DNA of 64,000 nucleotides from Paramoeba atlantica (Eukaryota; Protista; Discosea), in contig CDRNVI010000056.1 in assembly GCA_977017575.1 (NCBI GenBank), positions 1-64,000 of the forward strand, read 5' to 3'. This document shows, piece by piece, positions 2,027 to 25,698 of the stretch. The notes under the pieces were generated by a model. The model saw only the letters and a list, made by a program, of their open reading frames with translations. It was not told where the DNA came from and did not search any database. A program made the translations under genes and the position numbers. The stretch's first letter is position 1. Every line of letters starts with the position of its first letter.

Positions 2027-2699
2027 AATAGAAAATGATTTCTCAAAAATCTTTTGTTCCCTGTTTTAACGAACAGGGATTTAGAGTCTTCATTCCGCAC
2101 CTTCATATCCATCACGTATGTATTTAGAGGGGGTACTCCTACCCCTCTAAATATAACTCCTACGAGTCAGCAGATCTTGCCGAGATACGGAGCGATAGCA
2201 TTTCAACTCTTTCTACATGTAGAATCAGAGGACTTGATAAGCATAAGTAGTAAAAAACCGATGTTTGTTTCAGTTTCGCCGAAGCATGCTGTAGTTTTTT
2301 TCGCATTCCAATCATTGATTTCACCATTTCACCAGTCGCTGATTCCTAATGGTTGATTTCACCAAGATGACTGAGTTCATGACAGTTTTCCCGAATAATT
2401 CGACGAAATTCCAAAAATCGCTGCTATCTGCCGCAGACATCCTGTTGCTTTAAATAGAGAGCGTGGGGTATTGCCACCTGCCTCTTACACTTGTATAATG
2501 AAAAATCGTTTGTGTGGCTCCATCAACTTTGTTTTCCAAAGTGGGAGAAGGAGATTTTTGTTTTACTTTGGATGGTAGCTATGCTGACATGAAGAAACTG
2601 CATACTCTGTGTGACGAATACAGATCATCTGCATAGATTGAGTAAAATGAAGACCAGAAAATAATTCTGTTATCCACGTACAAAATGTGTTTAATTCAC

Positions 2700-3130
2700 T
2701 TTTGTTCAAGTAACGTTTGAATTGGGGTCATGGATCCAGTTTACGTCATCGCGGTGCTGAAAAATTTTAAAACTTCCTCGCAGTGCGCTCTGGGTCATAC
2801 TTTGCCGGCATGCCTCGAATGAGACTATCGTTCCGAAGAAAAAGAGAGTTCAGAGCTCGAGCTGAGCTGTGGAGCTTCCCTCGTGCACCTATTTCGAACA
2901 CCAAAAGAAAGGTGGCTGGGTGCTCAAGCTTCCTGGAATGATAAATCTTCGTGTACTTGTTCGTTTTCCGTTCACGCGCGTAGGCAAAGTTCTCCTCCCA
3001 GGGGCAAATTAGCTCGATTATGTACTCCTCTCCTTTCGTTAGTTTCACCCATCCGTCTGCTCGGGGCTCAGTATCGAGGTTCGTGAGCCACGACGGGATG
3101 GAGTTAAACTGTAGAAAATCGAAATTCACT
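2700..3130 (-). mobile_element. 3' fragment of an RLE non-LTR retrotransposon (HERO/R2-superfamily-like endonuclease)
   Basis: RADG..IIELICPWEEN..ARERK..KY..FEIGARG is the PD-(D/E)xK restriction-like endonuclease motif. A frameshifted tail (ALRGSFKIFQHRD) matches the 23605-24009 copy (AFRGSFTIYQNRD). Confidence 0.8.
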
Positions 3131-3830
3131 GAATTCACTGCTTCGTGCTTCGCAAACTCAGAGCCGTTGTCGCAAAAGTACGAACCTCGCAGTGCTCGGA
3201 TAATTTCCTGCGCAATGAGCTACGACCATTTGCAAGACAGCTTGCGAAGGATACCAGACCGGTGTTGTCGTTCTACAATACTGAGAAAAACGCAGTACTG
3301 TGCTGCGTCGTTTCAATGAGGTTCCATTCCCAATCTCATACCCATTCCCAGTCCCCATACGGGAGCGAGTGTTCCCAGAATCGGGATGTTTGCTAATATC
3401 CGTCCTATTTGGTATCTTGAGGCGATTTGTGCCACGACCTTCCTCCCGCCGAAGAAAAAGAAGACCAAGTGCCCCGATCTGTGTTCGCGCTTGATGAAAC
3501 CGTAAATTGCGACACGCGAAAGCTTCACATCATCTTCTTTATGTACTGCAGTCGCTATTTGTTGTGGACTAAATCCCTTTTCCGAAAGGGAGAGAATTTT
3601 ATGTCGCAGTGAATCTGAAATCGTTAGTTTCTTGCGCTTCCGTGACACCCTGGCTTTTTCCGTTGCCCCGTGCGCACTGTACTCGCCGAGAAATGTGCCG
3701 CGCTTGAGCTCTCGGTTCAGAGTAGCCTGGCTTACTAAGGAGGCTTACTCCAACCTTTTCTGCTATTTCTTCTTGTGAGAAGCCTTGATTATATAGCACT
3801 GCCATCGTTTCCCGGCCTTACAGGCTTAGT
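3130..3830 (-). pseudogene. Degenerate IS30-family transposase (second, divergent subfamily)
   Basis: Across frameshifts: HTH LYNQGFSQEEIAEKVGVS, Y...RAQ....RR, GFSPQQIA...LSRVAIYGFIK, GDWE (duplicated), IVERQHRSGILRKL and DNGSEFAKHEAVN. These are IS30 motifs in the correct order. Confidence 0.75.
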
Positions 3831-4551
3831 TACTGGCTGCTTGATGTCCCTGCGGGCGGCGTTAAGAAAATCGATACTCTCGCATAGGCCTCTTTTATCC
3901 ATTCCAGCACCAAATAACGAGTCACCTTACACACAGAGTTCTCGATTCGCCATGAACCAAGCAACTCATAGTACGCCCTCTTAAATAGGCGACTGAGGAC
4001 ACGGTCGTGAAGTTGGATGACAAAGAATCTTTTTTACGTAGAGTTTTTCAACCCAACGAGAAATTCGTAAGTTCACATCTGCGGGAGCTGAGCACCGTAT
4101 TTGCCCCAACCCCACTATACCCAACCATACTACCGTCTGAACTTCGCATATGAGTCTTCCAAAGCACTTATTGAAGTCAGTTCTGTATTTTGTCGGATCA
4201 TATCGATGACTCTTTCGGGCGAGGGGGCACCATAACGAGGAGGCATGAACGCACGAGCGGTGTACCCGTTCCATTGGTGAGTCTCTAGATCGCCATTTTT
4301 CGTCTCAAAAAAATACTTACAGCGACTCACAGCGACTCACAGCGATTCACAGAAATCTACAGGTACTCAAACTTTTTGCTATTCCTTTGTGACTTTTGGT
4401 TCTTGTTTTTCGGTTTTTTTGACAGAAAAAAAAATGGTAAAGCAGATTTATACTCAGTGTTGTAGACCTTGTGTTCTAAAGTCATTTAGTGTAGGAATAG
4501 AGTTTATCTTCTGCTAAACGTTTTTCTTGAAGTTTTTCTTAATCATAAGTG

Positions 4552-20540: not shown

Positions 20541-20774
20541 GGCTATGTCTCTACTTCGTTGACGGATCAAACAATTGACTGCCGCTTCGTTGACAGTAAA
20601 TCCAAGTGTCAACGACTCCTTGTTGTTGTTGGGCTCCTTACTGATTCCCATGCGAGGAATTCGTCGTCGCTACGGCAAAAAGGCAGAAGGCTCCGCCTTC
20701 TCACACTCGTTGACGGGTCAACCAATTGGCAGCCACTTCGTTGACAGTAAATCCGGCTGTCAATGGTAAACCCG
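20541..20774. mobile_element. Merlin-type MITE with a deleted right end
   Basis: Starts GGCTATGTCTCTACTTCGTTGAC, like 35311. Flanked by CTTGCCAA / CATGCCAA (7 of 8 bp). Removal restores the CRE zinc-finger frame. Confidence 0.7.
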
Positions 20775-22069
20775 CATGCCAATGCCCCTCTTGATACACC
20801 GTTTTCCATGCGCATCCCTGGAAAGAATATTTCCGTACGTGTCCATTTTCGCTGGGTGTCTTTTCCCGTGTAGCGGAGGGCGTCTCGGGGATGTGAAGTT
20901 TCTCGGCGGTCATGGAGTCGGTAGGTCAAATTTTTGCTACCTGATGACGTTTGCGTTTCCCGACCGATGCGTTCAGGTTCCGTTCGTCGGGAAGCAATTC
21001 TCCCAACGAGCTGTCAACGCGTCCTGCTACTGCTTCGTCTTCGTTTTCTACAATAGTGCAGGGTCAGGGGGAGTTCAGACTGGAGTCTGTGTTGTCACGG
21101 TCTTCGCTGTCGGACCCGGACTCCGCACTCAGATCAGCAGTACCCGGATGTTCAACTCCAGTGCACCACCCCATTGTCAACTCCAGCGCACCACTTTTTT
21201 CACCATAGTCGACCGTCATTCCTTTTTTCTGCGCCTCACCACAGTTGAACATCGTTCCTTTTTCCTTTCAACATAAAAACTTATCCAGAGTATTTAAAGA
21301 AAGCGTAATACAAGTGTAAGATCTGAGTAAGAAACTTTATTAGACAAGAATTTCTTCACCTTTACAAAATGCTTAAATTTATTGTCATTAAATTTCCAAC
21401 ACTAGCAGACTAACTTTACAAGCTTTCTCACGTACCTTTGCTTACTTAGCTTCTTTTACTTACGCAGTTCATTCACAAAATCCATTGGAGAACGATAATT
21501 TAATAATTTCCGAGGACGAGTGTTCAATTCCAATGCGGTTTTGTTTAATTCACTTTGGTTCAAATTCTCAAAAGATTCGGTTTTCTGATGGAATTGTCGG
21601 ATCAAACCGTTTGCATGTTCCACAGACCCTTTCTCCCACGAATGATACGGAGCGCAAAAGAAAGACTTGCATTTTAATTTTTTGTTTACTTCTTCATGGT
21701 GCCAGAATTCTGTTCCGTTGTCGTATGTGATTGTTTGAACCTTGTAATTCTTTAACCCGTCTACAATTTGTTTGCTTACCCCCTTCGCGTGCTTAGATTC
21801 CAACTTGCGAAGAACAAGGAAGCGACTCTTACGCTCGCACAGGGTAAGAATATATCCGGTATGCCCTCGACCCTCGACCAAGTCTGCTTCCCAATCGCCG
21901 TAGCGCCGACGCTTATTAACAATTTCTGGTCGATTTTCAAGTGGCGTTCGGTTGGAAATCGCGATGCGATCAGGTCTGGTGCGACGACGGTATGGCCTCT
22001 TTCGCCGGATCCGCAAATGGGTGTACAACTTGCCGCCTAAGGACGCGTTGCGACGAATATAGCGATATA

Positions 22070-24379
22070 CAGGGGTGAAAATCAGATGCTGGGGGGGTCT
22101 AAAATTAGCAATGTTTGCGCAATTTTGGAAAATAATAGCGCATTCGAGAGCTCTCGCAGAGATCTATGTATTTGGATAGGCGGTTTCCCGGGGTGTAAGG
22201 GGGTGGTCAACTGAGGAGAAGCCCAAAAACGTGAAAGAAATGCAAAAAGTGAAAGAAAAATTTTGTACGTTCAATAATTACAACTTTCCCCTTTTTTTTT
22301 CTACTACTATGTCGAAACGCCGCGGCATGCTGTTTAAAGTGTTTATGAGCATGTCATGACCATCTGTTTTAATGTAATCAACCGCCTTTTCAATAGAATA
22401 CAAAACTTCAGTCCTATTTTCTGGGTTTGTACCATCTTTAATAAAGGTGTCCATGATGTCCCAAATGTTTTCAATAGGGTTAAGATCTGGGGATTTTGGG
22501 GGAAAGTCTAAAAGACTTGGTTTTCTCGAAAGGTTTTAAAGGTGACATTGTGACAAGGAGCATTATTCATTGCAACTCTAGTACCGCTATGACGCTTCAA
22601 GTAACTTAAGAAACCCCCCCTTTTTGTCATAGCTGCTTTAAAAACATTTGAAGTAATTGTAACTTTCCCATTTCTGACCCTGTCGGGAAAGACGTGATAA
22701 AAAACTCCATAAATAAGGCTTATACCCATCCAAACGTTTACTCCATCCCCCCCAAACCATTTTTGCGCAGCTTTTAGGGGTGGCTTGGGGGGGTCACTCG
22801 CTCGGCAAATGTAAGAACGGCTTTCGCGCCCAAGTTGACAAGTAAACTTTTTTTCGTCACACCAAATAATGTGACGAAGCTGTGCGACGGACCACTTCTG
22901 CATTTTCAGTGCAAATGTTAGTCGCTTGGCCTTGTGAACTTCAGTTAAGAACAGGCCTTTCGAAAAAAATCGTTGGATCATCCCTTCGTCCTTCAAAAAA
23001 TTTACTAGGGCCGGCCTGCTGCAGGAGAAACCCCTTTTCCTAACCTCTCGAAGAATAAAACTCCACGAGGGACAACCTCGCGCACTTGTCGCGTTGGACG
23101 CGTCAATAATTTCGCGGCATGCCTCAAGAAGCTCCGGCGTTGTCACAGTGCGTTCGCGAGGAGGCGTAGCACGTTCAACATCCCCGGTTTCCTCAAATCG
23201 CTTAACCCACAACTTAACAGTGCTGTCGTGGACGCCTTGTCTTTGGCAAGTGGCACTGTAGGAGTTTGTATTCTCGTAATCTTTAACGAGAAGCATCCTG
23301 TGTGAATATTTTGTGTGCCCCGGGGGTTCATGTGATCTATCAGATAAGCTTTTACTGTTTTGAAAAGATACAGTTTCTGTACCTTGTTTTTTTTTAAATC
23401 CGCTGGGGCATATCAACCCACACAGACATCAAATGCCCGCTATGCAAGACAGAGGTACAAACCCCAAGGCACATTCTCGCGGGATGCCGAGTTGCTCTAG
23501 ATCAAGGGCGTTACACTTTCAGACACGACTTCATCTTACGGGCCCTAGATTACCATGTAAGCGAGTCCCCCCATACAGCTCTCTCTCATTTCGACCTACC
23601 TGGCATGCGACGCCCTCCAACGTGGCTAGCCGACAATGACGGTATGATGCGTCCGGACGGGTGGGTAAAGCTAAGGGACGGGAAAGAGTTCATTATTAAA
23701 CTAACTTGCCCATGGGAGGAGAATATGCAGGCCGCGCACGAGCGGAAAATGCTGAAATACCACCACCTGTGGCATACGCGAAAAGAAAATCATCCCGAAA
23801 CATACCTATTCGCCCTAAAGATTGGGGCTCGCGGAAGTCTCCAAGACTCGGCGAGTAAATTAGATATGCTCTTCTGCGAGGAAACAAAGCTTGCCAAGGA
23901 GTGTCGCCAACACTTGGTGACGAGAGCATTTAGGGGGAGTTTCACTATATACCAAAATCGGGACCGCGCAAACTGGAACCCCATGGATGTTTGTATTTCG
24001 GATGAGTAAACAGGAATAGCCAAACACGTCGTATGCGTGTACGGGATCATATGTTATGTGATCCCAAGCTATTTGACTTAATCTCTACAGTATAACTGTA
24101 TGAATCCTCCTCCTTAGAGAGGGATCGCTTTTGCGGCATAATAGTGAGCTGAAAAACAAAAAAAAACACGGAAAAAACTGCAAAAATTGAAAAATCTGCA
24201 ACTTTTAGGTGGGTAAAAAAACTTTAAAAAAATATCTTTTTCAAATTTGTTTTCTTTTAACGTGATAATAGCGCCAAAACATAGATCTCTGCGAGAGCTC
24301 TCGAATGCGCTATTATTTTCCAAAATTGCGCAAACATTGCTAATTTTAGACCCCCCCCAGCATATGATTTGCACCCCTG
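22070..24379 (-). mobile_element. Tc1-like element (CAGGGG-TIR family) nested in IS30
   Basis: ~100-bp TIRs starting CAGGGGTG, TA duplication (22068-69 / 24380-81). Transposase remnant 22508-23416 with IIWCDEKKF, VWMGIS and a frameshifted PPKSPDLNPIE. Confidence 0.92.
23370..24125 (+). mobile_element. 5'-truncated HERO/R2-superfamily-like retrotransposon nested in the Tc1 transposase start
   Basis: IRWG..CPLC..HILAGC..LDQGRYTFRHD (CCHC knuckle), then RPDG..IKLTCPWEEN..AHERK..KY..LKIGARG. GAT is duplicated at both junctions. Confidence 0.85.
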
Positions 24380-24512
24380 TATGGTAGAAGTCGAGGCGGT
24401 ACGACAGCTACGGATCGTATTTGCAATCTGTTCCGGGCTGTGCTTCTTTTGAAGTCGAGAGCTGACTTCCTCTTCCAAAAGGCCTTGTATCTTGTGAGGC
24501 TTGACCTTACAG

Positions 24513-24560
24513 ACACGAGAGGCGTCTTACACGAGAGGCGTCTTACACGAGAGGCGTCTT
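24513..24560. repeat. 16-bp unit ACACGAGAGGCGTCTT x3
   Basis: Read directly. Creates an in-frame TAA (24527-29) in the IS30 ORF. Confidence 0.9.
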
Positions 24561-25698
24561 TTCGAAATGCGCTGTGCCCTCGTCCCCTCATAGCGCTGAC
24601 CCCTTCTTGCATTACGCGCCAACTCGCGACAAACAGTGCTGTGACTTTTGCCAATTATGCGAGCTATGCTTCGCCGACTCTCGCCAGATGTAAAGAGTGA
24701 TTGAATACGATTACGATCGTAATGACTGAGTCTTAAATAATGGCGCATTTGTAGTGTAGATCCGAAGGATAATATAAAATAATACTTCTTTAAATAATTG
24801 ATGGTGCATTGGAAATGAGAATACAGTTTTTAAGAAAAAGTGGTGCACTGGAAATGACAAGAAAATTATTTTTTAGGAAAAAAAGTGGTGCGTTGGTGTT
24901 GACAATCCGCCGTAGCCCCGAGCCTTCTTCTTTTTCCGTCCTTTGCAACATCCGACCACTGAGAAATTGAGATCTTGAGGTGTAAGATCCGGGAAGACTA
25001 GCTTATTTTCATCATAATCGTATTCGGTACGGCTTGACCTGTGGACATGGCGCTCGCACTTCCCCTTCACAGCCTTATTAGAAGTCTTCAATTGGCTGAG
25101 TGACGAGGGGCTGGTTCCTTCGAATTGAAACTCGTAACTCTCAGTCAGTCGGACGCTAGAGAAAGGTTCTTCTTCGGTGATAGTGTCATGGTGCCCCGTA
25201 TCCGGCGTCTCGCCTTCTATAGAGTCCGTAATGTCGCAAGCGATCTTTTCAGCGTGTAGTGACAATTCCGATGAGGGGTCAGGCCGAAGTGGTGTTGTAT
25301 ATAAACTTTCCTCGTATGTGCTCACTCCCTGGACGAGATCTTTGCTAGCGTCAAATCGATTCCAGGAGCCTAGCTTATGCTCTTTCGCTTCACGCTCAAA
25401 ATCAGCGAAACAAAAGGGATGATTAAATAAAAAGGGGTGATCGAAGTTTTGGACGAACTGAACAAAAGGTTTTGAAAATTTTATAACAAAAAGAAGTAAA
25501 AAAAAGTACCGTGACGCCCCCCTATACAAAAAGCTAAAAAGATTTCTACGATGGTCGAGAGTAGCATGATTGTGGGGCCTAATGTAAGAAAGTGGGGCTC
25601 ATAAATGTGGGGCTGTAATATAGGGGTGTTGACTGAATTAAATGAGGCAATTAAATGCGGCAATTAATTAAATGGGAAGGTAATAGAATTATCAAAAA

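Follow-up and report, generated by a model that had tools for sequence, protein, structure and literature searches.

A probable eukaryote-resident transposon family with an IS30-type transposase, represented by an inactivated copy in a protist genome

The window analysed here, a stretch of 64,000 nucleotides of Paramoeba atlantica DNA (contig CDRNVI010000056.1, positions 1 to 64,000 of the forward strand), contains at positions 21143-24911 on the minus strand an insertion sequence (IS) whose transposase is of the IS30 type. With a probability of about 0.9, we consider this element to be a dead, non-autonomous copy of a transposon family that resides in a eukaryotic genome and uses a transposase of the bacterial IS30 family. 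As found, the copy is 3769 bp long; without a Tc1 element nested in it the length is 1457 bp, and the canonical element has 1424 bp. An earlier note on this DNA had claimed that an IS30 element transposed inside a eukaryotic genome, and the claim is now supported by multiple copies with differing 3-bp target-site duplications, by two empty sites and by a composite element found at two loci.

The transposase lies on the minus strand and is split into three pieces. The N-terminal part occupies 24382-24748 (ATG at 24746-24748) and contains an in-frame stop codon at 24527-24529, and the C-terminal 204 codons, carrying the DDE/rve domain, are found at 21456-22069 (stop codon at 21456-21458). The piece at 24527-24748 matches the Pfam domain HTH_38 (PF13936) with an E-value of 3.7e-13, and the same domain is recorded in the 98%-identical protein P0001. 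The C-terminal 204 residues alone score 202.9 bits with the NCBIfam model NF033563, 'IS30 family transposase' (cut-off 80), and also match Pfam rve. Other integrase-like profiles fail, IS481 giving 42 bits (cut-off 224) and IS21 28 bits (cut-off 160). We assign the protein to the IS30 family because it reaches 203 bits with the IS30 model, whereas the IS481 and IS21 scores are far below their cut-offs; an IS481EU, IS3EU or Ginger-type identity was rejected on the same IS30 and IS481 scores. The DD33E triad seen earlier corresponds to D170, D228 and E262, which are invariant across six aligned subfamilies, with 33 residues between the last two. Intact copies in the genome encode a single open reading frame (ORF) of 315 residues, the length of the earlier reconstruction (~315 residues), and ORFs of other subfamilies range from 293 to 362 residues. 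Across the Tc1 insertion point the intact copies read TASTSTIYRHIRRNASLGGKLYTHLR, and once Tc1 and one TA are cut out, the transposase frame is regained without any shift, in line with the earlier note. The following features by which IS30 membership is judged are present: the profile match, HTH_38, DD33E, the single ORF, inverted repeats, a duplication within the 2-3-bp range and the length. IS30-family elements measure about 1.0-1.7 kb, a range that accommodates both the canonical 1424 bp and the 1457 bp of the window copy without Tc1. Among look-alikes in the ESM Atlas, every cluster is bacterial.

The termini were fixed by aligning the window copy with seven full copies (L002-L008; near-identical, 1424 bp) that are 95-96% identical to it in DNA sequence over the whole element length. 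Similarity breaks off at the same two positions in 7/7 comparisons, which places the ends at 21143 and 24911. The ends given earlier (21145 and 24909) were each 2 bp too far inward, and together with the 2-bp CC duplication that accompanied them they are ruled out by the seven-copy alignment and the empty sites. The same two lines of evidence establish a 3-bp duplication, GTA on the plus strand, at 21140-21142 on the left and 24912-24914 on the right. In the direction of the transposase, the window copy and the full copies begin with GGCGGATTGTCAAC and end with GTTGAACATCCGGG, and their duplications are TAC (window), GAC, GGA, GAT, CTT, CCT and TTT. Since L004 and L006 represent one site on two haplotype contigs, the seven copies amount to six independent sites, each with its own 3-bp duplication; the earlier note had proposed a search for further copies, though with different 2-bp duplications. 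When the window copy and the composite on contig C54 described below are included, there are eight independent insertions with their own 3-bp duplication, two of them confirmed by empty sites.

The imperfect terminal inverted repeats measure 27 bp and are the same in seven copies; either end has GG as its two outer bases, which are hence non-complementary. Inverted repeats had been noticed before and are indeed kept in the full copies, only their exact ends having been misplaced by 2 bp. A ~20-bp end motif is present in three 5' and two 3' copies, the outermost of which form the terminal inverted repeats. In the 5' untranslated end (24749-24911, minus strand), three direct motif copies lie at 24796-24821, 24835-24860 and 24880-24905, the outermost belonging to the inverted repeat that ends at 24911. 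The 3' element end (21143-21200, minus strand) consists of the terminal inverted repeat at 21143-21169 and an inner motif copy at 21173-21200, and the repeat search of the window mapped this pair at 21152-21169 and 21177-21194. Both ends are kept in all copies, so that the additional repeat-like copies spotted earlier near both ends turn out to be conserved parts of the element. Each 5' motif copy closes with pyrimidines and then AG, the shape of a trans-splice acceptor. In subfamily 3 the end motif is another one, ATTGTCATACTCAGCGCAAC, which is also repeated (L012, C3:576330-579923, around 1050-1081 and 2420-2467); in a comparison of L012 with L014, extra motif copies lie upstream, outside the shared stretch, and make the boundaries and duplication of this subfamily ambiguous.

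The element interrupts a degenerate ORF (24915-25529, minus strand) belonging to a dispersed repeat with at least 40 copies in the genome. We regard this repeat as a retrotransposon because its copy on contig C9 has an intact 959-residue ORF with reverse-transcriptase-like motifs (L051, 3970-6849). The locus L051 itself covers C9:426000-435999 on the minus strand and has, downstream of the 959-residue ORF, a 446-residue ORF (2542-3882) with a Cys/His-rich region. That the element sits in a retrotransposon ORF, as first suspected, is therefore supported both by this intact relative and by empty copies elsewhere. Uninterrupted retrotransposon copies on C9, C19 and C41 read ...ACAGTAGCCCCGAGCC..., the empty site on C30 reads ...GCAGTAGCCCCGCACC..., and either sequence equals the window flanks joined with one GTA; on all four contigs the empty-site sequence is ...CAGTAGCCCCG, with GTA only once. 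These are the empty alleles that the earlier note had suggested looking for. The region C30:148000-158000 is collinear with window positions 34802-18202 at 95-98% identity and has the same leucine-rich repeat (LRR) and Tc1-type genes and no IS30 element. Judged by this alignment, C30 represents either the sister haplotype or a duplication of very recent date, and it carries the empty site. The empty form is also present in contigs of the same organism from the public runs X1 and X2, and X2 in addition holds the window's own flanks with zero differences. The correct join restores the retrotransposon reading LGAT..LSAESG.DSEDRDNTDS, as in the 959-residue ORF on C9. The in-frame junction KKARGYG/TADLS reported earlier was a coincidence, in which the 2-bp error in the ends was offset by a deletion beside the site: right after 24927 the window retrotransposon lacks 27 nt in comparison with C30 or 38 nt in comparison with C9. 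In contig pairs such as C10/C58, C8/C52, C2/C12 and C30/C56, many loci are doubled with 95-100% identity and the same flanks, and the assembly seems to hold both haplotypes or homeologues that are 2-5% apart and differ in transposon insertions.

The window copy has accumulated several kinds of damage. It differs from the 1424-bp canonical sequence by 16 substitutions (1.1%) and from the core copies L002-L006 by 16-20. A tandem expansion at 24513-24560, in which a 16-nt unit is present three times versus once in intact copies, adds 33 nt and creates the in-frame stop codon at 24527-24529; the joint 24508->24543 seen in public runs corresponds to the single-unit form of other copies. The largest interruption is a Tc1/mariner-like element of 2310 bp (22070-24379, minus strand) with terminal inverted repeats of ~110 bp and a partial transposase frame at 22508-23416. 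It is flanked by a TA duplication (22068-22069 and 24380-24381), its long inverted repeats start with CAG, and its helix-turn-helix region is of the Tc1 type (HTH_23 and HTH_Tnp_Tc3_2, the latter at E 1e-5, under the Pfam cut-off), all of which are marks of the Tc1/mariner group; the DDE part is frame-broken. The corresponding Tc1 family has a canonical length of ~1562 bp and many copies in the genome, with mutual identity of 96-98%. Within this Tc1 element lies yet another insert, a 750-bp repeat (23363-24112, plus strand) with a retroelement-like C-terminal ORF at 23605-24009. Its first 24-26 nt are the end of the spliced-leader exon, after which comes sequence other than the intron; it is missing from other Tc1 copies, and the joint 23362->24113 that skips it is seen in public runs. 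The insert has the appearance of a retrocopy, truncated at its 5' end, that was made from a trans-spliced retroelement RNA. Its ORF bears a CxxC...H...C motif, and other copies of the repeat begin at differing 5' points. The nesting is therefore four levels deep, with a retrotransposon containing the IS30-type element, which contains Tc1, which in turn contains the spliced-leader-led retrocopy. The later invasion by eukaryotic elements, postulated in the earlier note, is thus plainly visible in both nested insertions.

The spliced leader was searched for with a 3' motif of the kinetoplastid type, a query that serves as a lead only. The motif occurs at 181 dispersed loci versus 0 for the reversed control, and each occurrence is followed by GTA, as at an exon-intron boundary. 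These loci are scattered over many contigs with no single tandem array (examples are L054-L056, at C14:91759, C23:255060 and C2:38802).

Movement within the eukaryote is also indicated by a second composite. On contig C54 (L138, 736-3718), the same IS30-type element carries Tc1 at the identical TA and in the same orientation, and is devoid of the 750-bp insert. The C54 and window copies are similar precisely up to the family termini and have unrelated flanks beyond them. The C54 composite has its own 3-bp duplication, GAT, and its empty site was verified in a repeat copy on C9 that is uninterrupted and has GAT only once. A derived C>T change at element position 37 is common to both composites and absent in the 7 other copies. 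Because the same composite occupies a second locus, it most likely moved as a unit, presumably mobilised in trans, inside the eukaryote; if it moved with Tc1 on board, transposition in the eukaryote must postdate the entry of a eukaryotic element. Alternatively, two different IS30 copies might each have received a Tc1 at this TA and with this orientation, or ectopic gene conversion between IS30 copies might have brought Tc1 into a second element that was already resident. The IS30 parts of the two composites do differ by 20 substitutions and share just one derived site outside Tc1, Tc1 copies are 96-98% alike throughout and offer no discrimination, and the IS30::Tc1 junction occurs only twice in the genome, in the window and on C54. 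However, position, orientation and TA are identical even though the IS30 element has many TA sites, and each composite has clean termini, a 3-bp duplication of its own and an empty site that was verified, as a transposed unit would; the shared C>T change also speaks for common descent of the pair. We therefore regard independent hits or conversion as unlikely, although their probability is appreciable.

The wider family was defined by a six-frame search of the window's own assembly (45.7 Mb in 248 contigs), which gave at least 149 IS30-type matches, about 24 of them with full uninterrupted frames of 295-388 residues. The subfamilies are 41-98% identical to the window copy and 41-60% identical among each other. 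Copies are spread over more than 50 contigs, up to 1.2 Mb long, amid LRR genes and retroelements. The core copies L002-L006 differ mutually by only 2-8 nt in 1424, and this low divergence points to very recent activity. The ratio of nonsynonymous to synonymous substitution rates (dN/dS) between two subfamilies is 0.07, and therefore the enzyme has remained constrained. Outside this genome, the closest database proteins are 45-49% identical and come from metagenomic contigs, and the closest proteins of named bacteria are 40-44% identical (Puniceicoccales of the Verrucomicrobiota, Ectothiorhodospira, Idiomarina and others). The ENA assembly ERZ24900291 (L053 and L145; contigs ctg3222l and ctg3766l) has a 98%-identical transposase beside LRR genes and a 57%-identical member of the family; it probably stems from this organism or from a close relative.

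A phylogeny, which the earlier note had also called for, was obtained from a careful maximum-likelihood analysis of eight subfamily representatives, one ERZ24900291 protein and bacterial and metagenomic IS30 transposases. The genome subfamilies and the ERZ24900291 protein form one clade (ultrafast bootstrap (UFBoot) 96, Shimodaira-Hasegawa approximate likelihood ratio test (SH-aLRT) 96), which is nested in a larger group, supported at 100/100, that comprises metagenomic and Verrucomicrobiota IS30s. This topology fits a single acquisition followed by deep diversification, and the nesting among bacterial sequences leads us to infer a horizontal origin from bacteria. Several separate transfers from related bacteria might be considered instead, since the subfamilies (41-60% identity) are as far from each other as from the nearest bacterial proteins (45-49%), and a quick tree gave the joint clade an SH-aLRT value of only 83. 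Yet the careful tree unites the genome subfamilies, a single change suffices in 98% of its bootstrap trees, and features of a eukaryotic style, among them long untranslated ends and repeated end motifs, are common to all subfamilies (subfamily 3 being a case in point). Multiple transfers thus appear improbable.

It is even less probable, and to our mind barely credible, that these sequences are host genes domesticated from an IS30 transposase and no longer mobile. Strong purifying selection, expressed in the low dN/dS between subfamilies, would be expected of such genes, but conserved terminal repeats, site-specific 3-bp duplications and empty sites would not, and near-identical copies at unrelated loci accompanied by many decayed ones are marks of a transposon rather than of a single-locus gene. 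Finally, bacterial DNA from a contaminant, an endosymbiont or a chimeric assembly (the last of which the earlier note held to be fatal to its claim, as it did a lack of other copies) has next to no probability and is untenable on sequence grounds: the transposase does score fully in a family otherwise recorded only from bacteria, but the element lies within the ORF of a eukaryotic retrotransposon and is in turn broken by Tc1 and the spliced-leader-led retrocopy, its copies lie on more than 50 contigs of up to 1.2 Mb among LRR genes and retroelements, the window neighbourhood consists of LRR genes, retrotransposons and Tc1 elements, the GC content of the element (0.43) and that of the third codon positions of its ORF (0.46) equal the values of neighbouring host genes, and the nearest bacterial protein is less than 50% identical.

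Other features of the flanks deserve brief mention. A match to LsmAD in the flanking ORF, from the N-terminal part of the retrotransposon ORF, was dismissed as weak (26.9 bits, barely over the cut-off) and does not denote an ataxin-2-like host gene. No tRNA or other RNA genes were found in the flank. Window positions 20541-20896 (~356 bp) are missing from the collinear part of C30; this segment is made of units of ~48-86 nt that are not tRNAs and recur widely at 88-98% identity, for example at C56:35311-35799, C30:147013-147501 and C12:1116083-1116558.

Based on these observations, the following history may be proposed. The canonical element of 1424 bp would produce one 315-residue protein, whose N-terminal HTH_38 domain presumably binds the ~20-bp end motif and whose DDE domain (D170, D228, E262) would join the element ends to target DNA cleaved with a stagger of 3 bp, giving rise to the 3-bp duplications. 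By analogy with bacterial IS30, transposition might proceed through a circular copy-out/paste-in intermediate. A Tc1-like element would have landed at a TA inside the transposase gene of an IS30-type copy, and the resulting composite of ~3 kb, with its broken transposase gene, would then have been mobilised in trans by the transposase of intact copies. The window copy would have entered the retrotransposon ORF on one haplotype; the insertion of the spliced-leader-led retrocopy into Tc1 and the tandem expansion with its stop codon would be later events in that copy. Expression might be achieved through polycistronic transcription and spliced-leader trans-splicing, and it is conceivable that the pyrimidine runs with AG in the 5' motif copies act as the trans-splice acceptors. 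The family as a whole would go back to a single ancient transfer from bacteria. The fuller proposal is that the family, for which we use the name 'IS30EU', is active now in a kinetoplastid-like protist, that it trans-mobilises broken copies with at least 1.5 kb of cargo and that its end motifs may double as spliced-leader acceptors. We offer it tentatively and rate it slightly below an even chance.

Several points weigh against this picture. The kinetoplastid-like identity of the host depends on the spliced-leader motif and is accordingly a lead only. The composites have a single derived substitution outside Tc1 in common, so that the conversion or repeated same-TA hit discussed above retains some probability. 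Abutted right-end/left-end junctions with a spacer of 0-12 bp are absent from the assembly; joined-end intermediates are transient, so this absence says little. The public contigs listed end at repeats, and none of them was shown to span the element-flank junctions of the window copy. In one candidate RNA run nothing of the element was present, a result that is uninformative on expression.

How does the element compare with known systems? Like bacterial IS30 (the E. coli prototype, NF033563), it has one transposase with an N-terminal HTH_38 and a C-terminal DDE domain, a 33-residue gap between the last D and E, terminal inverted repeats of ~26 bp, a 3-bp duplication and no accessory gene. Unlike it, the element lives in a eukaryotic host, and its transposase is at most 49% identical to the nearest bacterial protein. 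With its 1424 bp it also exceeds the prototype in length, ~163 nt preceding and ~313 nt following the ORF, and its end motif is repeated in 3 + 2 copies, in contrast to the single binding site at each end of bacterial IS30. The non-complementary outer GG bases are a further difference, and no circle-type end-to-end junction was seen in the assembly. Tc1/mariner elements of the inverted repeat/direct repeat (IR/DR) type, such as Sleeping Beauty, have multiple transposase-binding repeats per end, and their broken copies can be trans-mobilised. The resemblance to Sleeping Beauty is confined to this architecture, for the end sequence, the TA target and the DDE spacing differ.

Closer parallels are found among eukaryotic superfamilies named after prokaryotic IS relatives, namely IS481EU, IS3EU and ISL2EU (Kojima and Bao 2023, PMC10045372). 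The paper defining IS481EU names ISL2EU and IS3EU as the sole earlier IS-named eukaryotic superfamilies, does not mention IS30 and predicts that more 'ISxEU' lineages will come (PMC10045372). Like these three, the family described here is a lineage of protist DDE transposons with affinity to one prokaryotic IS family (PMC10045372), but it has a different parent family (IS481 42 bits against a cut-off of 224, IS30 203 bits) and a 3-bp duplication. In an earlier survey of all IS families in 430 eukaryote genomes, only IS607 was found, and its transposition in eukaryotes was not demonstrable for want of inverted repeats or duplications (Gilbert and Cordaux 2013, PMC3673617). Eukaryotic IS607 is similar in being a prokaryotic IS family in nuclear genomes, attributed to horizontal transfer (PMC3673617); in contrast, here the duplications and empty sites demonstrate transposition within the eukaryote. 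Neither a eukaryotic IS30 lineage nor the name 'IS30EU' was found in the literature searched, Repbase and ISfinder being outside its scope. New in this analysis are the exact ends, a 3-bp duplication that recurs over independent copies, the verification of two empty sites and an IS30::Tc1 composite inserted twice.

Very few prokaryotic IS families are known to have settled in eukaryotes. For the IS30-type element, the 3-bp duplications at independent sites, the empty sites and the insertion in a retrotransposon prove directly, at the genomic level, that it has moved within a eukaryotic nucleus, to which the probable movement of a Tc1-bearing copy adds. The family thereby newly connects the DNA transposons of prokaryotes with those of eukaryotes, and its repeated end motifs and long untranslated ends put the remodelling of such an element on view. 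It is tempting to think that bacterial genes devoid of promoters may be accepted unusually readily by polycistronic, trans-splicing organisms. If the fuller proposal is true, 'IS30EU' would become the fourth superfamily of eukaryotes to be named after an IS, and it would be a candidate tool for gene delivery in Euglenozoa.

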